64,000 nucleotides of DNA from the NCBI GenBank assembly GCA_904063045.1, contig CAJFCJ010000010.1, positions 1,426,001 through 1,490,000 of the forward strand, written 5' to 3'. The translations under genes and the position numbers were made by a program. The notes beneath the pieces are model-generated. The model saw only the letters and a list, made by a program, of their open reading frames with translations, was not told the origin of the DNA and did no database searches. This DNA is from Dimorphilus gyrociliatus (Eukaryota; Animalia; Annelida). Shown here piece after piece: positions 36,831 to 49,344 of this stretch (the first letter of the stretch is position 1; every line of letters starts with the position of its first letter).

Positions 36831-39800
36831 CTAGAGGATTATACAAGCGCGTGAAGCGCCTACCGAGTTTCTTGGGTAAAAGTTCACTGTTTCTACACTA
36901 CTTAGTAATTCCTTCTCTTTTCTGGAAGACAATCGAAAACGACTTGCCGATGATGCTCTGCTGCTTACGAATGGTGGCAAGCCAGTTTCAGTATCAACTC
37001 GATCCCATATTCTCTTGACCGAATTTGGTCCAATATGCTTTATTCTTGTAGGTAGTTCTGACAAGATCTTGTTTGGATCATCATTCAAGGGATCAACTAT
37101 TATATATTCTAATACAGCACCATCTTCTAAGCCAACTAGAATCGTTCTATCATCTTGACACACTTTGATGCATGTTATAGGAGCTACAATGAAAACAAGA
37201 AGAAAGAGAATAAATAGCGTGATTAGAAAGCTAATTCCTAATTAGTTACCTGATGTAGTTATCTTTCCGATAATTGATCCATCAGCTGTTCTTCTTACCC
37301 AAAGTTTATCTTGATTATAAAATATTAAAAGTCGACCGTTATGAGCAAAAGATCTTGGAAGATTCTCATCTACTATCTTTCTTTCAATCAGACCTGTATC
37401 CAAATTTATCACATTGCATTGATCATCAATGCAGTATTGATTATTATTTTCATATAGAACTTTTTCAAGTTGTACTACTGGAGAGAATAAATCGACGATT
37501 ATTCTGAGAGCTATTTCACTGCAAATATCTAATTCCATTAGGCCTAGACATTGATTGTTTTCCCTTTTTTCTATACTGTAGATAAGCGTCACCAGATAGG
37601 GATTGTTGGTGTGTACGTTAAAGTCAACAATTTTCTGTAAGCTGTCATCGTGTTCCCTGAGCCTATCTTCGTCAAACGTCTTTACCTCAAGACTATCCTT
37701 TAAATCTATTACAGTTAGTGATGTTCCTACATAAGTTGCCTGACGTTCATCATAGTTATTTGCGGATAATAAAACGGCAAACTTATCTTCAGATGATAGT
37801 TGCATATCTTTTAGTACGTATTCTGCAATGTTCTCTACATGATCTTCGTCAATTATCTCGTTAGCGTATCTTAATTGAACTGTGTCCTCTTCAAAGTCGC
37901 CAAATTCAATAAGGCAGAATAAACTAGCAGATCGGAAAGTATTGGCTCTTTGGTGAAGGCAGGCAAAAGTATTACTATTTTGTAATGCCTTTACGCTGGC
38001 AGAAGCTTCTCCAATCTCCAAAAGAACTTTTCTCTGTTTAATATCCCAGATCCAATTTGAATCTCCTCTCTCACTACCAGTTAGTGATATTACAGCATAG
38101 TTTCCATCACAACTAATAGCCGCTCCTTTAACAATTCTAGGATGAGTGAAAAGATCAATTAGTCTGCCAGTGTCCATTTCTAGGATTCCTACACTTTCGC
38201 AATCTTCGCTTATCACGAGAGCTGAGCCGCATTTGTTTACTTCTATTGCTTTTATAGGCTTAGTAAGTCGATCTGTCAAAATGACATGGGAACAGGCACT
38301 AGCTAATTTCCACACATGTATAGTATTTGATTTGGCTTGTTGACTTATTAATTGGGCTGCTTCGCTACCGCTTGAATTAGGTGCTAATATCCTGTTGACC
38401 AATCCTATAGGAGTTTGCAAAACTGCGGCTGGTTTCATGGATGGTGACGTTGCTCGAACTGGCCAGAGGAAAATTGTTCTGAAGATTGACGAAACGATAT
38501 AATTGGAATCTGGTGTGAACAAGGCATTCTCAAAACCTAATCTTTCCGCTGTCATGTGCCCAGGTAATTGAAATTCAGTTGGTATATAACTCGGCCTCTC
38601 AATATGTTGAATTTCCCTCTGTGTATCATTATCAAATACAACTAAATGTGAATGAGATTTGATAAAGAAATAATTGTTGTTCGGCGAGACCGTCATATCT
38701 TCGACATCCTCGCCAGATAGTTGTTGATTTACATTAATACTGAACTGAATATCGGCGTTTCCTTCATTGTCCAAAAGAAGAATATAGATTGTGGTTGATT
38801 GTCCATCGCAACATACAAAAGCTTTTTTACAATCCTCTGTAAGGCAAACTAATTTCGGATAACCAGCCTTTTCAGTATCGTAACCAAGCACAACTTGACT
38901 TATTAATTTCATATTTTCGGTATTAAATATACAAATATTAGCGGGTCCATCATTTGTTAATAATAGGTCGGCAGAGGAAAATAGTTGACAAACTGTAGCC
39001 TTACCACTCAGACCTTTTACAGACAACAGTTTCGAAGTTAACAAACTGAAGAAGAGCAAACGACTTGATTCTTTAGTTGCTGCTATACAGCAATGACCAT
39101 TCTGCAGGGATGGTTTAGAGAATTTGCATTTAAAACCTGTTGATGGTCTTGACGGAAATTGGATGTGTCGTTCAGGTACTATCTGACCAATGAAAGACCC
39201 GTTGCTAGCGTCATGTATCTTAATTGATCTATCGTGCTCTTCGTCTATGATAATAATATATTTTCCACATGGTGAACAAAATAATTCACCAACGGAAGTT
39301 TCAACTGTAGCTACTCTCCTACATTCTTTGGCATCTAGAACAAATACTGTAGAGCTTTTATTCGATTTGGCCAGAATATATCTCTCATCGTTAGATGATT
39401 CTTTTTTTAGAGCCTCCAAAACATCAGGTACTTCCGGTAAAGTCACGACTGTTTTGAGAGGCGAACCTGGTACATTGTGAAATGGAGTTACAGGTATAAT
39501 ACCGCAGTCGTCGATGCCTTTCACATCGCATTGATAGATAAGAGACTTAATTTTTGGGTATTCTATACAATGACAAAGTAATCTACCAGTTAGTTCTACC
39601 GCAAGATTAGAAGGATTATTTTCTAAAATGTCAGCAGAATCTCTTAGAGCATGTTCTACAAGTAGGACATCTCTTCCAGATATTAGACTAAAATCATCTA
39701 AGAGTGCATCAAATCCCAAGGCCATGAGTTTACTTCTTAACCAGTCAAAGTTGAAGAGAACGTTATCTTCTAGCTTGTCAATTTGTCCAGCTTCAAAGAG

Positions 39801-42430
39801 ATGTTGAGGTACATTCATTAATTTCCTGATGTTGAAAGAGCCGTTTTCAAATTGTAGTGGTTGGGAAGGTACTAATCTATTGGCTGCTTTTATGCTATTT
39901 CCGTTTTTAATAGGTTTCGAAATATCATGCCATCTTCCTCCAAAGTATTCAGCTAAGGTTAAATGAACAGATTCGGCTATTTCAGGATTTCTTAAGTATC
40001 TGACCTTCGCAGCTTCTCTACTAAGCTCGTGAGCCCATGTCGATACATTTAATCGTTCGCACTGATAGATTCGCAAAAGAGACATTAGGGATAGTTTTAG
40101 TTTTCTCCAAAACACATGTGGAATCCTAGTAGAACCTGATAAAACTGGTGGGCAAACTTCTAAAAGAACTTGATCATCTAAAGAAAGAAGATCATCCATT
40201 TCACAATCAGTTAAACCATGAGAAACTGCTGTGAGATACGATAAAGATTTTGAAACTAAAGCTTCTCCATGCATACCCTCTAAGTGACTGAAGAAAGCTG
40301 CATAAAATGTAGGTACATCTGGTGGAAGTTTATCAATTCCTATTAAACAAGTGGAAGTCCATCTAGCAGCTTCCTCGCTTAACAATTTTATATAACTAGG
40401 TAAAGAGCATTTTTCTAACAGTTTACTTATAATCTCTCTTTGATCATTCTGCAGGATTCTGTTTTTCTCCGAAAGTAAAGCATTTAACATTTTCAAACCG
40501 CTTTCTTTACCAAGCTCTTTCAATTCTAAGAAATTATCAACAGATACATTGTCTGCTAATATTGCATTTTCCCTTAATCCAATTAAAATTTTTACATTTG
40601 AAGCTAAATACTGAGGAATCCATGAAACATTCGAGACGTTTCCAATAATAATCGTGCACGCTTGACCCCTGGGAATTTTAGTTAAAAGTTCGTGAAAATA
40701 ATCAATGATAGCTTGGGAAGGATTTCTTGGTATATCTTCAGTTGGTTGCTCAATGGCTAAAGCTAACTGAATGCATAAGCTATGGATTGTAGAAACAATA
40801 TCTTTGGAATTTGTAGTAAGGCCGACAAATTTAATAATTGTCAAACTTTCTTCATCTAATATCCAATCGGGAATATCTAAGGCAACTTTACTATTAAAGT
40901 ATTGAAATATTCCATTAATATTAAGATATTAAAGGTGTTTCTTAATATAGATTATATATAGTAATATACTGTATATATATGACACAGAACTTATGAATAT
41001 TATTAATTAGTTTGTCTCTTAATGGAATACCTCAATAATGAGTTTTTACCAACTCCGCTGGGTCCATAAACGTAAAACGGAGTGTTAGAATCACTAAATA
41101 AATATTTTTTAACAGTGTTCAATTCTTGCTGACGTTCGTTGAAACTACACCAAAGTCTTTTACAATAAGACCACTGGGTGTTCATTTCAATTAAGAATGG
41201 AATAAACCTAATAGATCGATTGGGAGCACTCTGGTCAATTAAACGTTCCATCTCGGATGTAAACTTATCGGAAAATTCTTTTAAATAGTCTTTATGCAGA
41301 TCTGGGCAAATACCGTTATTGAATTTCCATAAAACTTGAAATTTATGGATATTTTCGAGCGGCAGCCAAGATTCTAATTTGCATTCTAGCTCTTCTAGAC
41401 GTCTTCTCTCTTCGTGATCGAAAAATATATCACCAGTTCTTTCATCTTGTATAATATCGGCAAAAATCGATGCTCTGTCGGCGTCAAGATTATTCTTCAT
41501 ATCTGTAATTGTCCTTTTGAATATTAAACATTGCTGTTTAGGCTTTTCAGAATGTAAAATTCCATCATAAATCTCCCGTTCAAACTCGGACACTGATAAC
41601 TCATTCTTTGTTTTTATGTCAATTTGTTCATTCTTTAGGAGCAGGTCAAGACCTGTTGATATGAGTTTGCATATCTCTTTAGACTTTTCAGCAGAATCAT
41701 TTTGATGTTCGGATGGAATACTAAGGACACAACAAGGTGGTATAGAATTCGAATCGATTCTATACCACGATTTTAATAGACCAGCATTTCTAGTACTCCT
41801 GCCTTTGACGGATTTTAATGCAGAACTAATTAGCCTCATAAGGTCTGCAGGTATTCTTCTCGGTGGTAGTTTATCACCATATTTCTGGCCTACGACAACC
41901 TATAAATGGCAATATTGTTGGATTAGTTTTTTTTGACAGTCAATTGTTAAAGAAAGAAAATCTTTGATGACTTTACCACAAAATATGGTCCTAAACTGTT
42001 CAATTGACATTCTCCTAATTCAAAAGAATTTAAAGTGGAATAATCGCAATCGTTTATCGATAATCCCCATTTTAAGTCTATAATCTGTTAAGAAACATGC
42101 ATTAAAAAGATCCAAAGAACATTTAAAATACAACACTAAATTCTAGCCCATATTTCTGTCTTGTATATTCTCTTAATTTAGGGTAAACATTTTCAACCAA
42201 ATAATTCCGTTCAACAATTGAATCTATTGAATGAAATATTGAATGAAAAGGATGATCCTCATTCAAGTAATGAAAATTGTAGATCGTATTAAAAGAGATT
42301 ATAATTAAAATGTCAACTTACCCTCTCCTTTAGAACTTAAATAAACTCTTATAACGTCTGTTGGTGGTTCAGAAAGGGTGCCGGGATCAAAATTTCCGGA
42401 TAACAATGCTCTAATCTCTTTTTCCCCCAT
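36831..42430 (-). CDS. NACHT and WD40 repeat protein (NWD1/NWD2-like STAND protein with DUF4062-like N-terminus)
   Basis: MGEKEIRALLSGNF...DVIRVYLSS; ERNYLVENVYPKLREYTRQKYGLEF|IIDLKWG (NWD/DUF4062-like). P-loop GPSGVGKNSLLSKVA across the 41017-40891 intron. NWD-like helical region (LTDCEMDDLLSLDD, FNIRKL, FNFDWL) and a long beta-propeller-like C-terminus ending RACIIL*. Confidence 0.85.
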
Positions 42431-43620
42431 TCCCAGTTATCTTCTACCTATCTTACTTGATTCCACCTATTTTCTTGAATCTTATTCAGGTAATGCTTTT
42501 GTTGAATTTTTTAAATTCAAACAATTTAAATTGTCTTGATATATACGGTGGCTTCGAATATTTACATTGTCGTCATTGACAACAAGTGTTATTAGGCTGA
42601 CATTTGTCAACTTGAGACTGGTAATCAATTCCATTCTGTGTATAAAAATTTCCAGGGATAGATGCCATCTATCGGATAATATATTACAGAGAAGAAAATA
42701 ACTTTTATCCTTTTGATTAATCAAATATAAAGATAATGTTCAGTGCAACAGTACGCAATATGTATGATATAGATTATACATATATATATATATATACTAT
42801 ATATATACATGGGCATATATGTGTATACTATTTAGATATATATTTCCTTTACATATATAAATAGATCTTCAACAATTAATTTATTATTTATCAATTTTTG
42901 TTGTAAAGAAGATAATCGAAAGTAAACAGAATGCTACGTTCACAGCAGGAAAAAGTTAAATGGCAATTACATGAAGAGCAAAATGGTTTCTTTCTTCGTG
43001 AAAGTGTCAATCATTAGGTCAATTATGAAATATAAATATTGATTTGCATAAAGAAATGAACAATTAAGAATTCGTCTTATAAGATGGTTTTTCATAAATA
43101 TTAATGATATATTTTATTACTACAGTTGGCTCTAATTAATAGATATCATTTTAATAGTCACTATCATTTTTTAGTTAAGTATATACTCTAGTAGGTACTA
43201 AATTGGAAATATCCTATCAAAAATGTATGGTAAGAGCGTAGCGCGGACAATTTGTCTCCTTAACTGAACCACTTTCAATTTTCAACTACACATCCTCTCC
43301 AAAATTACTAAGTGGAGAGACATTTTTTACCTTCTTTATCAATTTTTAGCGCTTTTATACTGTAATGGATCTTGAAAAAATTGCAGTTCACTATCAATTA
43401 AATCAGGGAGTATATATTTTCGATAATAACTTATGCAATGACATGTGAGCTAATTAATCACATCGTTTTTTATTATTATTTTAAAAGAGGTAACCGTTTT
43501 AAAGTATAGAGGTGTTCTTATTTGTTTATTGCATTGTACATATGTATATATATATATGTTTATATATATATATATATATTTTTAATAGTAATTAGGTGAA
43601 TTAGTGATTAAAGTTTGACT

Positions 43621-44916
43621 TCAAAGCCAAAACGGTCTTCTCCTCTCTCTATCCATGGCAATACGGGATCGAAGTGTTCCATAATCGCCTCTACTGTTAT
43701 CAGAGCTACGTTTTTTACCCAAAGTGTTATCCAACCAACGCTTTCCCAAAGTATTATCCAACCAACGTTTCTCCGTTAACCTAAACTCCGAGCTGTTAAT
43801 AAATCAAACGGGAGCCGTATGATACCAAATTTAATCATTATAAAAAGAATACAAACTCATCCAAGTTTTCCGAGTGCCTTCCGGCAATCAATGCTGCTCC
43901 TTATGTAGTTACGAAAAAAGGAAAATTGAAAACAAGGACAAAACATTAGTCTGTTGCAAATTATACATTTCGAATTAACAAAAGCTATAGTAATTAATAA
44001 ATAGGCTACTTACTATTAACCTTAATTTCTTTCTTTATCAAATATTATCAATCGTAAAATAAAATAAGCAAGAAAGAGAGAAAATTCACTAATTGATTGA
44101 TTAGCTTAATATAATAAGCTTTGTATTCTATTTAATAAGTTTACTCTTTTTCACTTTGTCCTTTTCTTTCCTTTCTATCACTTTTCATCTTTTTTCCTTT
44201 TATTTCCTAACTAAACTTATTTTTCCTTATAGTCTTTACCTTTTCTTATATTTACAACAACTACTTTATAGGTTAGAGAGAAAGACGAAGAATTTTCCAC
44301 TTTTATTCCCTGCAGTCCCCGATTCGTTCACCCATTTTCTTCATATATATTTAATCTATTCTACTAAAACGCTTGAAAGTTTAGAAGGTTTTTTTTTATT
44401 AAAGACTTTGTGATAGAACCCGTGATAGTGTTAAATTGGGATTTCGTAGTTGTGATAATTGATGAAGGAGAGGAGGTTGTTTGAAAAATAACACCCTCTC
44501 TTCTTACTGAACCTTCTCTAAATTAGCCGATAAAAAAGCGTAAAAATACTTTGGAATAAAGAAACTGACAAAAGTGTTTCTGTTCATTCATTTCCTTCCT
44601 GGTTTTTCTATCATCTAAAGCAGATCAATTCTCCCTAATGTACTTAAGACTAGAAGATCAATCCGATATTAACAAAAAGTCTTATCAGGACAATTCTAAA
44701 AATATCCTTTAATTAAGGACAATTTTTTTTCAAATTAATAATATAAGGCGAAAAAAGAGTGTAAAAAATGAGTTAAAAGCCTATTTATATAACTGGAAAC
44801 TCAATTGTTATTTGCTAAAATAAGAATTCGTGAAGGGAGAATATGTAAATTGGATATATCAAAGTTTTAACATACTTACCACTCAGTAAGACGATGCACA
44901 ATATAGCGAACTTCAT
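43621..44916 (-). CDS. Proneuropeptide encoding 2x WLDNTL-amide (83 aa; not in ORF track)
   Basis: Three phase-compatible exons (44916-44880, 43899-43857, 43792-43621) give MKFAILCIVLLSGAALIAGRHSENLDDSEFRLTEKRWLDNTLGKRWLDNTLGKKRSSDNSRGDYGTLRSRIAMDRERRRPFWL*. It has a signal peptide, dibasic sites and Gly amide donors. Confidence 0.88.
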
Positions 44917-45455
44917 TCTCCTACCAGTTCTTGTATGTGAAAGCAAAGTTATGACAGTTGTGAAGCGTCGCTCATTTGCATATTTGTCGCCAGCGCTTTT
45001 TACTTTTTGTTTGCCACGTAAAATTCTATATTTTTGATTTATTTATGGTTTAATTTTTTTAAAATGAATTCTTTTATTAAAATAACTAGTTACTTTACGA
45101 AATGAAAGAAGTTATTTATGTTCTTTTAATGAAGATTCTGTGTTGGGTTATTGTTTAATCTTTAGCTAGAACAGAAGGAGTTTTTAGGTGTAAATACGAC
45201 AGGAGGATAATGTAACCTGCTTTATCTAGGTTTATATATTTGTATGTACTAAATAATAATGATACTATATAAGTCATCAGTTTAGGTAAAGAAGGTTCTT
45301 TATTAAATATATATGAAAATCTTCATGAATATATATACTGTATATATTCATGAATTTATATAAGTCACACAGAGAAACACAAAGGTTAAGTTCTTTTTCT
45401 TATATTATTGTTTCTTTCTTCATTTAATTTCATTGTTGGATCTCCTTTCGCTCTT

Positions 45456-45909
45456 CTAGGTTTGTCTTAAAGTTCTACATTCAGGTCGAAGGCAACGAGC
45501 AGCCGGATTGCTTCTTAGGCATTCTCTATTGAAGCAGGCCGAAAATCTAGGTAACCAGGTCCTCTTAACATCTTCATCCGTTAGACGAGATCCCGGGAGG
45601 ATAAGACCCGAATCGACGGAGCGAGATGAGATAAAACTATACGGTTAAATTTGACGGGTTATTACTATATATTTTATATCTAAAATATTATTATTCAGTT
45701 TATTATAATCTATGTAAAATAGAAGGAAAGAAAAAGATAAATCGTATGTTTAAAAGCTATATAAAAAAAAAATCTAGTACATTTTAAAAGTAAAATATAC
45801 ATAAAAAAAGTTACATAATCTTACTATATTGTTAATATATTGATAATAATTTATGCTTTATTGTTTACCAGATTAGGATCAAAAAGAAAATACTTCTCCT
45901 CTTCTCCAT
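45456..45909 (-). CDS. Secreted prepropeptide releasing a 34-aa four-cysteine peptide (73 aa; not in ORF track)
   Basis: Exons 45909-45869 and 45636-45456 (phase-2 GT-AG intron) give MEKRRSIFFLILICFISSRSVDSGLILPGSRLTDEDVKR|TWLPRFSACFNRECLRSNPAARCLRPECRTLRQT*. Exon 2 is a GC-rich island in AT-rich DNA. A likely upstream exon ends at 46240, downstream of a TATTTAA box at ~46305. Confidence 0.78.
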
Positions 45910-46788
45910 ATTTGATATCAAACGACTGTTAATTTACTTGCGTCTTACTTCTTTATAGCTAGTTTTCGTTGCTATGGCTGTAAACAAACCATATTTAAAG
46001 CTCTGAATATGCTTAATGCTAGAGCCTTTATTATATACTATTATATTTCTCATATATACTTATGAATTCATATATATATAAATATGTATATGTATATATG
46101 TATCTGCTGTATGTACATATTAGTATGTATGTATATATAAAGGAACTAGTATTGTTTCTTTAAAAAAAGTCTATTGGAAAGGAAATGGATTCACATGTGC
46201 TGATTACTTTGTAAAGAATTAGTTATAAGTTGTGCTTACTTTGCAAATTCACTTCCGCAGAAACAAGGCATATGAAAAAATGGTATAAACGATAATAATG
46301 CCTTAAATAGCGTGGGGACTTTGTATAAAATAAAGAACTACATATTTTCCATTTTGCTAAAGCATTACTTAATAATTTTCAATTGGGTTAACTAATTTAT
46401 AATCTTTATAGCAGTTATTAAACTTCTTGGCTAATTCTCTAACTCAGATCCATCATCAACCCAACTTATATACTTATATTTCTTTCATTTCAAATCACTT
46501 ATATATAAATATATATAGTATTCTATTATTTACAAGCAATTATTAAATGATTTATACAAGATTTAAAACATTCTATAATAAGAATATTTTGTACTTAATA
46601 TTTTTTTTATTTAGAATAAAGTTTCTATTATAAAGTGTATTCATTGCTTTAATTTGAATTACAACACACCTATGTGTTATTAGATGAATTATTATTCATG
46701 ACAATTATATGAAACAACGATATTCAATATTTCATTATTTTTAACCTAGGCCTCCTAAAAGTTGAAACAAACAAAACAATAAGGATCT

Positions 46789-49344
46789 TTAATCAAGCTT
46801 ATTCTTAGTTTGCACCAGTTTTGGCTTATCAACAAATTCGGTTCCATAATAATAGATTAAACCACCCGTAACAGCAGTTGCCATAATCCAAAAAGCTAAA
46901 TATAGCGCATGCTCTCCCGAGTGGTCACTTCCAACCAAAAAGCTAACAAGTAACATAGAAAAAGCTACGCAAAATATTGCAGGTAAAATATAAAATTTAA
47001 TATCTCTCTTTTCCTGCAACGGGCAAATGGTTGTTGCACATTCTCCTTCGTCCACCTGATGATTTCCTAAAATCAAATCCACTGCATCCTGCCTGAAACC
47101 ATCGTAAAAATTGTTCTTAACATATCTAATTGCTGAGTTGACACCATCCTTCATTAAGCCCATTTTTGTTCTCTTTCCAGTCCGAGTGAAATCAGTTTTC
47201 AGAGCTCCCGTTCCGGCGTACTGCTTGGCGCAGGCATCCGCGTTATCAGCCCAAACGTTTTTGAAAACAGTCTCAAACGCCAATTGATCCTCTACACGTT
47301 CGCCTTCTTGTAGAATGTTGAATTTTACTAGTTGGTCCTGCAGGGTCCTTCTCGCCAGTAAACTTTGAACAACGTTTGTCCTATCTAAACAATCTATGCA
47401 GTTAGTCCTAAAAACTCCATCCTGAACGATAACAGTACGGCCGTCTTTATCGTGAGCAAAGAATTTAAACATTTTTCTCTCTTCTTCTAACCTATCGAGC
47501 AAAATAGATAAACGGTGCCACCTCATCTTACTACATTCCTGATGAAAGTCAAAGGCCTCGTAGCGGATGTCTGGATTCTGTAAATGGAAAGGATATTTAT
47601 ATTATTATAAGCACAAAAAAGGATGACGTTGCTTATTTTAAAAGTTAGCTCTAGTAGAAAATTATGTGAACCTTAGAGCTGTTTGTCAATTGTCTGAACG
47701 AATTCTCCAATTCCTTTTCGGCTCCTTTGTGATCAATCAAATTAATCAATACTTGTTTACCATAGCTGAATAATTGTGTTGCAAAGTGTTTTTGGAAGGC
47801 ATTGGAATGATTCTGACTCTGACTAATTTGTGGTGTTGGTTTATATTTCAAGTTAGGTCTTTGAGACCAAACTAAAGGTATAGATCCACGAGTTTGAACA
47901 AAAGAAGCCCTATATCCCTCACATTCAATTAATTGTTCAGTTTCAACGTAGTTAGCAGAATTACCATCAACATCTAAGCCTCTCATGTAATATCTGTTTA
48001 AGGAAGATAAAAGTGTAAATAAAGAGAAAAGAAATATTCAAAAAATTTGTTAGATCAATGAAACATAAATAGAAAGAATATCTAGTGTTTATACAGAATC
48101 CACGCACATATACATATGTGTATCTGAGTATATATATATAAATTTATACAGTATATATATAAGTATAATACATATATTACATACACTATATATATTTTAT
48201 ATAGAGCAGCTATACATAACTTTTATTGTACATGTTTTTAAGGTCTACAATGCAAATTGTATAATCCATTTAAATCAAACTATACTGTACTTTATACAGT
48301 TTTTTTCCAGTACTTGCTCCTATACGTTCGATCGATATATAAATGATGTATAAAATATACGTATTTCATATTATAAATTTATTATTCCTTTCTCTATATC
48401 ATTGTTTTTCTGCTATATAAAGGTGTGTAATTTGTTGAATCTAGGGTGTTTTGAACTACATTATCAGTACATTTTACTTAAACAATATTTTAGAAATACT
48501 AGTGTGAATTACGTGTACATTTACATAGGTGATTAATTATTAACTACTAACCTAGTACCAGCTCTGTGGCAACTTCGTCTTGATATTAACGCATAGCTGA
48601 AACAATGATTTTTAATAACAACTTGCTTAATTACTACAAAACCCAGCATAAGAGGTAATGAAAATTTGCTTAAATCATCTCTATGAAAATCTTTTAGAAG
48701 GTGTTGATTCCATACGAAACGAGCATCGGCTCTTTCGGCCAAGCACATAGATACAAAGTCCGGAGATGTATTATCTAGTCTTTGTAAAGTATGTGTTAAA
48801 TCATAATCATATGAGAAATAGTATGACTCAATTCCCAGTGCATGTTCTGCTAACGAGATATACATTCGGTTGTGGTGAATTTGGTCTTCCGTCATATGTA
48901 AAGTAGTTCGTTTATAGGATATCAGCTGTGTGGACGCGACTTTCCATATTTTCTTTCCATTGATTTCGCCTACCAGCGTCCGATCAGTGATAACAATTAA
49001 GTAATTTCCTGCCAGTAACTTAATTATTCCAAAGATGCCGAAGATAACTCGAGTCTCAGCAACATTCGGTATTTGTCCCTGGTTTTCTACAAAGAAATAT
49101 ATCAGAAATATTGTTTAAATTTGCTCCTATTTTAAGAAAATAGTGTATTAACGCTCACTGTCAACACTTATCTCCTGTGTAACGCGATCAATTACAAGCA
49201 ATTCGTTTGACAAGGAAGAGTCAATCGGTTCAATAAAGAATTTATCGTTTGTTGTATGCCTGTTAAAATACATATTAGAATTTGACAATTATTAGCAGAT
49301 TATAAATTTCATACTTACAATTTCATGTTATCATAGATCGCCAT
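46789..49344 (-). CDS. SACM1L: Phosphatidylinositol-4-phosphate phosphatase SAC1
   Basis: MAIYDNMKL...; [13 protein letters not shown]; [13 protein letters not shown]; [11 protein letters not shown]; [23 protein letters not shown]; catalytic [16 protein letters not shown]; two C-terminal transmembrane helices; KxKxx ER-retrieval end (KNKLD*). Confidence 0.97.

Follow-up and report, generated by a model that had tools for sequence, protein, structure and literature searches.

An expressed, conserved and unannotated gene of Dimorphilus gyrociliatus predicts a WLDNTL-amide precursor, likely a divergent relative of Platynereis WLD

Dimorphilus gyrociliatus (Annelida) is a model for genome compaction and miniature nervous systems. 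Here we ask whether a 27-bp tandem duplication, lying in a part of its genome without a gene call, belongs to a genuine gene for a secreted peptide precursor, whether the product would be a neuropeptide, and whether that product is related to the WLD proneuropeptide of Platynereis dumerilii. The DNA analysed, here called the window, is a stretch of 64,000 nucleotides from contig CAJFCJ010000010.1 of assembly GCA_904063045.1 (positions 1,426,001 to 1,490,000), and all coordinates below are counted from its first letter. According to the gene calls of the assembly, the first called gene at the locus is NWD1-like (36831-42430) and no gene is called between 42430 and 44921 in GCA_904063045.1, so that the WLDNTL gene is unannotated, as an earlier reading made from the sequence alone (the sequence-only reading) had held. 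Rfam and tRNA scans of the window found nothing. A 365-aa IRF ORF of the window recurs unchanged on CAJFCJ010000010.1, and a 21-kb locus taken from that contig agrees with the window at every base. The flanks of the gene hold SAC1-like, NWD1-like, IRF, CCT and mTOR orthologs. The gene is missing as well from the neuropeptide complement of D. gyrociliatus that has already been published as 'canonical'. The precursor list in that work (PMC7854359, Supplementary Data 2) contains no WLDNTL, NTLGK or PFWL string, and its sole 'WLD' string sits inside whitnin. A literature search for the string 'WLDNTL' matched no paper. What is new here is a conserved, expressed and unannotated gene of the proneuropeptide type that predicts WLDNTL-amide. 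Taken together, the evidence makes it very probable that this three-exon gene is genuine, expressed and conserved, and that its product, 83 aa long, is a proneuropeptide-type prepropeptide, likely related to WLD but divergent from it. With coding exons as short as 37 and 43 nt, it shows how small multi-exon peptide genes slip past gene models as well as homology-based precursor surveys.

The coding sequence joins 44916-44880, 43899-43857 and 43792-43621 on the minus strand into 252 nt in frame, which amounts to 83 codons and a stop (Table 1). This join bears out the two upstream micro-exons with matching phases and a GTAAGT donor that had been proposed from the letters. The encoded protein begins with a signal-like N-terminus, MKFAILCIVLLSGAALIAG, and continues through an acidic spacer, the block KR-WLDNTLG-KR-WLDNTLG-KKR and a 21-residue spacer to RRR-PFWL and the stop; both ends read in the spliced protein as the sequence-only reading had given them. 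The block itself derives from the tandem duplication, which had been placed at about 43718-43771 and which TRF finds at 43718-43771 (period 27, 2.0 copies, 92% matches), with the minus-strand translation that had been claimed. The two 27-bp units differ from each other at 3 of 27 bases, each of them a synonymous third position. G+C content is 44% in the exons of the gene, 28% in its introns and 32% in the whole window.

Table 1 Features of the WLDNTL-amide precursor gene and its surroundings (window coordinates; X1 and X2 are the two transcript runs, L003 is a contig of a related worm).
Feature	Position	Strand	Content and evidence
Two-exon gene for a 73-aa secreted four-cysteine peptide	45443..45979	-	Spliced contig, joint 45636/45869
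Conserved upstream block (promoter and/or 5' UTR)	44917..45001	-	87% identical to L003 over 85 nt vs 67% further upstream
Exon 1	44880..44927	-	At least 11 nt of 5' UTR, ATG 44916-44914, 37 nt CDS (MKFAILCIVLLS + first base of Gly), donor GTAAGT; contigs reach 44927 (X1) and 44921 (X2); joins 44880 to 43899
Intron 1	43900..44879	-	980 nt, GTAAGT..AG; joint in both runs skips 980, CT..AC (cut +1)
Exon 2	43857..43899	-	43 nt; end of signal-like segment and start of acidic spacer (GAALIAGRHSENLD-); in spliced contigs of both runs; 43-nt exon kept in L003
Intron 2	43793..43856	-	64 nt, GTTTGT..AG; joint in both runs skips 64, CT..AC
Exon 3	43594..43792	-	CDS to stop 43623-43621, then start of 3' UTR; contig-supported
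Repeat unit 1 (KR + WLDNTL + candidate Gly amidation donor)	43744..43770	-	Invariant in L003 at the protein level
Repeat unit 2 (KR + WLDNTL + Gly, then KKR)	43708..43743	-	Invariant in L003 at the protein level
RRR-PFWL C-terminus	43624..43644	-	Candidate fourth cleavage site and C-terminal tetrapeptide; 1 synonymous change, otherwise invariant between the two species
AATAAA, likely poly(A) signal (inferred)	43525..43530	-	Downstream of (TA)n at 43540-43579

Transcript evidence comes from two public runs of two studies, which were compared over 43200-46400 and hold one spliced contig each. In the first run (X1), recorded as a marine metatranscriptome (2025), the contig measures 342 nt; in the second (X2; 'organism A', 2017, library kind not on record) it measures 328 nt and has a depth of 1350. 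Both contigs cover 43594-43792, 43857-43898 and 44879 to either 44921 or 44927, and in both runs the joints are CT..AC on the plus strand, that is, canonical GT..AG on the minus strand. The junctions 44880/43899 and 43857/43792, which had been predicted from the sequence, are exact in these two independent runs, and the gene is shown to be transcribed and spliced precisely at these positions. A contig of the intron in X2 has a depth of 11.8 against 1350 on the spliced contig, as expected from pre-mRNA or DNA background. The contigs break off at a (TA)n repeat before the transcript's 3' end is reached. A (TA)20 microsatellite occupies 43540-43579 within the presumed 3' UTR.

Conservation of the gene could be followed in a related worm. 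An exhaustive phmmer search recovered a 181-aa read-through ORF (P0001), the last 56 residues of which are 82% identical to exon 3, and this ORF sits on the genomic contigs L003, L004 and L005 (Logan SRR23372228, SRR23372229, SRR31984834). Gene callers render the locus on these contigs as one run-through ORF of 181 aa. DNA alignment reveals that the orthologous locus keeps coding exons of 37, 43 and 172 nt, all with GT..AG borders, and that its spliced protein has 83 aa too. Between the two worms dS is about 0.77 and the introns are partly alignable at about 74%. Intron lengths are 1322 and 110 nt in the ortholog and 980 and 64 nt in D. gyrociliatus, and despite these changes the frame and exon phases are conserved across both species.

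Nei-Gojobori estimates for D. gyrociliatus against the L003 ortholog locate the constraint within the protein. Over the whole CDS there are 25.5 synonymous and 17.5 non-synonymous substitutions (dN 0.095, dS 0.769, ratio 0.12). The 21-codon block KR-WLDNTLG-KR-WLDNTLG-KKR accumulated 6 synonymous and 0 non-synonymous changes (dN 0) and RRRPFWL 1 and 0 (dN 0), whereas the N-terminal spacer (codons 20-34) shows 5.5 of each kind (dN 0.17) and the internal spacer (codons 56-76) 10 synonymous and 9 non-synonymous (dN 0.21). As estimated from these substitutions, purifying selection is shown to be strongest on the two KR-WLDNTLG units, with their dibasic and Gly sites included, and on RRRPFWL. That peptides and predicted cleavage sites stay frozen as the spacers drift is the pattern classically seen in precursors of bioactive peptides. 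A non-coding or spurious transcript, in which ORF and repeat arose by chance, could be suspected from the shortness of the ORF and from a homologue known only from one related genome. This explanation is effectively refuted by the dN/dS over the CDS, by the peptide block with its purely synonymous changes and by the retention of frame and phases through changes in intron length. In addition, when the 290-nt transcript was shuffled 20000 times, an ORF of at least 83 codons (ATG to stop) appeared in only 14 of the shuffled sequences.

The non-coding DNA flanking exon 1 is better conserved with the related worm than the WLDNTL exons themselves. Within intron 1, the first 41 nt (44839-44879) are 95% identical to L003, and on the other side of the exon lies the conserved upstream block listed in Table 1. 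These flanks suggest conserved regulatory sequence around exon 1. The upstream block holds ATGCAAAT at 44974-44981 and a CAACTG box. As an enriched octamer ATGCAAAT was rejected, with 9 occurrences in the window against 6.3 expected, and it is notable only for its place inside the conserved block.

Beyond the ortholog, the exhaustive HMMER search returned three matches, all of which were rejected. One is a cytochrome P450 with a YDTSVGKKV repeat (P0002) and another (P0003) a protein of 3823 aa in which WLDN is internal and dibasic sites are lacking. The third (P0004, on contig L006) is a perfect 27-bp minisatellite (L006 414-540), open in all six frames and without a signal peptide or Gly. L006 comes from a JGI metagenome, and the KRWTDNTMA repeats that the minisatellite yields on translation give it the look of a peptide precursor. 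A metagenome scan gave a single match, the bacterial contig L007, which is rich in G+C and contains WLGNTLGKRWL by chance; it was likewise discarded. A word-based protein search with exon 3, which is blind to proteins outside 31-98 aa and thereby to one as long as Platynereis WLD, gave no candidates. Among look-alikes in the ESM Atlas none exceeded 0.86, and a few peptide-hormone clusters at 0.78-0.83 provide a lead only.

How would such a precursor be processed? Its N-terminus starts with MK, runs through a hydrophobic core of 16 residues (mean Kyte-Doolittle 2.76, residues 3-18) and passes into a polar acidic stretch, and small residues occupy the candidate -3/-1 positions here and in the ortholog. 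By the heuristic of hydrophobicity and the small-residue rule, this segment qualifies as a putative signal peptide; no Cys follows it. The remainder has the form of a proneuropeptide, with copies bounded by dibasic sites and ending in Gly (KR-WLDNTLG-KR-WLDNTLG-KKR), a basic site before the C-terminus (RRR-PFWL) and conserved peptides between divergent spacers. Judged from secretory-peptide biochemistry, the hydrophobic N-terminus would act as a signal peptide cut around residues 15-19, prohormone convertases would cleave after KR36, KR45, KKR55 and RRR79, and a carboxypeptidase E-type enzyme would remove the basic residues, after which peptidylglycine alpha-amidating monooxygenase (PAM) would convert the exposed Gly to an amide. 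The predicted products are two WLDNTL-NH2 (monoisotopic [M+H]+ 760.399) and PFWL, together with two spacers, one N-terminal and acidic and the other of 21 residues. For PFWL the expected mass is 562.302, and for the spacers 2386.116 and 1847.852. The convertase, carboxypeptidase and PAM steps form a well-established secretory-peptide pathway. D. gyrociliatus clearly makes use of it: its published precursor list holds many Gly-KR amidated peptides together with 7B2 (PMC7854359). By analogy, WLDNTL-amide could be released from neurosecretory cells and act on a receptor, probably a GPCR.

Alternatively, the gene could encode a secreted, convertase-processed peptide of non-neuronal cells, be they gland, epidermal, reproductive or antimicrobial, rather than a neuropeptide. 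The very high contig depth in X2, a whole-animal run, would fit a gland product too, and a small secreted cysteine peptide is encoded next to the gene on a contig of similar depth. We nevertheless regard this as unlikely: dibasic-flanked, repeated and predicted amidated peptides that are conserved against divergent spacers are a hallmark of neuropeptide precursors, the architecture matches that of published D. gyrociliatus precursors, and Platynereis WLD, the sole known peptide that resembles it, comes from sensory-neurosecretory cells.

That similarity raises the question of descent. The proposal that a proneuropeptide named WLD exists in Platynereis is confirmed by UniProt entry F8UKU1 (Conzelmann et al. 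2011, 2013, PMC3890597), whose peptides begin WLDNS. The precursor consists of a signal peptide, a four-cysteine N-terminal part, about 20 copies of KK/KR-WLD(N/H)S(Q/H)F with an acidic tail, and a four-cysteine C-terminal part (F8UKU1), and the peptides WLDNSQFKDED and WLDNSQFRED have been detected by MS (F8UKU1). According to papers that summarise the work, WLD peptides lower ciliary beat frequency and raise the number of ciliary arrests. WLD also marks apical sensory-neurosecretory cells of Platynereis. Comparison with Platynereis, as the sequence-only reading had advised, was apt; for Capitella, which it had named alongside, no WLD precursor is on record, and the 2013 paper found no ortholog outside Platynereis (PMC3890597). 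At a threshold of E <= 0.001, no WLD precursor of the Platynereis type emerged from our phmmer search of 1.84 billion representatives, a search in which short repeats give little power.

A second link to WLD may come from the adjacent upstream gene (Table 1). Its 73-aa product ends in KR and a 34-residue peptide with the spacing Cx4C-x8-Cx4C; the list of precursors published for D. gyrociliatus lacks it, and a word-based search with it found no candidates. Two short end segments of Platynereis WLD were used in the alignments. Against the C-terminal cysteine peptide of WLD the neighbour reached a Smith-Waterman score of 45, which 1 of 5000 full shuffles attained, as did 17 of 5000 in which the cysteines stayed in place, with the common pattern D-x-KR, x8, S-x-C-F-x3-C, loop, C-x4-C-x2-L. 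Scores against four other cysteine-containing D. gyrociliatus precursors were 18-26, and with the N-terminal cysteine part of Platynereis WLD there was no alignment. The alignment is suggestive rather than proof because the top pair among the cysteine-rich controls, the Platynereis C-terminal part against sCAP, reached 38. In the related worm, the 747 nt upstream of exon 1 that L003 holds contain no cysteine-rich ORF. At 1487 nt, the X2 contig with the four-cysteine gene reaches into the 3' UTR of the next gene upstream, whose ORF (46789-47526) has a hydrophobic tail and the phosphatase motif CxDCLDRT of Sac1 type. The join in this contig, from about 46745 to 45978 on the minus strand, has the appearance of an intron of about 767 nt with GT..AG borders; it could stem from read-through, from a UTR exon that is shared or from a merge during assembly.

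With two neighbouring genes resembling different modules of Platynereis WLD, the probability of common descent is raised, and we place it at somewhat over one half. The arrangement hints that the two genes may mirror separate modules of one ancestral precursor. A tentative extension of this idea, which we consider tenable and still short of an even chance, is that WLD is an older annelid family, that in Dimorphilus the repeats and the four-cysteine peptide are split into adjacent genes (by fission, or through fusion in the nereidid line), and that WLDNTL-amide arrests cilia. A somewhat doubtful alternative is that the gene is a real proneuropeptide specific to dinophilids, without descent from WLD, in which case WLDN would reflect convergence or chance and the neighbour would be a generic two-disulfide hairpin. 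Consistent with such an origin, no significant database similarity to any WLD precursor was found, the architecture is unlike WLD (two copies, predicted amidation, no cysteines), and Cx3-4C...Cx3-4C hairpins occur in other annelid precursors, e.g. QERAS; the cysteine-rich control score cited above points the same way. On the other hand, chance would produce an N-terminal WLDN match, anchored at a dibasic site, with any one of some 100 Platynereis precursor families in roughly 1/1000 cases (a rough estimate from amino-acid frequencies), and the adjacent gene independently aligns best to the WLD precursor of Platynereis. On balance we favour relationship over convergence: the WLDNTL gene and the Platynereis WLD precursor are probably related, with the former divergent and not a canonical member. 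Since the differences are substantial and HMMER recovered no WLD-type precursor, we refer to it as WLD-like without assigning it to the WLD family. The earlier suggestion of an amidated peptide, either WLD-type or new, is supported. A proneuropeptide-type gene is supported by splicing and purifying selection, while the two copies and predicted amidation set it outside canonical WLD.

Whatever its ancestry, the WLDNTL gene adds a testable, highly expressed and predicted amidated peptide to a system of few neurons. The predicted peptide is short and cheaply synthesised, and ciliary-beat assays and receptor deorphanisation are therefore feasible at once. If the link to WLD is true, this would be the first relative of the cilia-inhibiting peptide outside Platynereis and a rare case in which the modules of one precursor are found in two neighbouring genes. 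If, further, the reading of an older WLD family split over two genes is true, WLDNTL-amide would serve to arrest cilia in an animal whose movement is wholly ciliary.

In comparison with known systems, the gene shares with Platynereis WLD an annelid secreted precursor in which repeated peptides with W-L-D-N-(S/T) stand directly after a dibasic site, and each has been described without an ortholog outside its own lineage. The flanks are comparable, with KR or KK preceding WLDNS or WLDHS in Platynereis and KR preceding WLDNT here. The peptides of Platynereis are 10-11 residues long, non-amidated and mostly KK-flanked, with Phe7 and an acidic tail, whereas the WLDNTL peptide has 6 residues, is Gly-extended, present in 2 copies and flanked by KR/KKR, and lacks both Phe7 and the acidic tail. 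In addition, Platynereis WLD carries cysteine domains at both ends of one precursor, while the WLDNTL propeptide contains no cysteine. In overall architecture the gene resembles small repeat-type precursors of D. gyrociliatus itself, such as RGWamide-like, PxFVamide and RYamide, which have 80-110 aa and an MK-hydrophobic signal peptide (Martin-Duran et al. 2020, PMC7854359). These likewise contain a few Gly-KR-flanked copies of short peptides with acidic spacers between them (PMC7854359, Supplementary Data 2). The WLDNTL precursor differs from the published D. gyrociliatus precursors in the sequence of its peptide, which is unrelated to any of them (PMC7854359).
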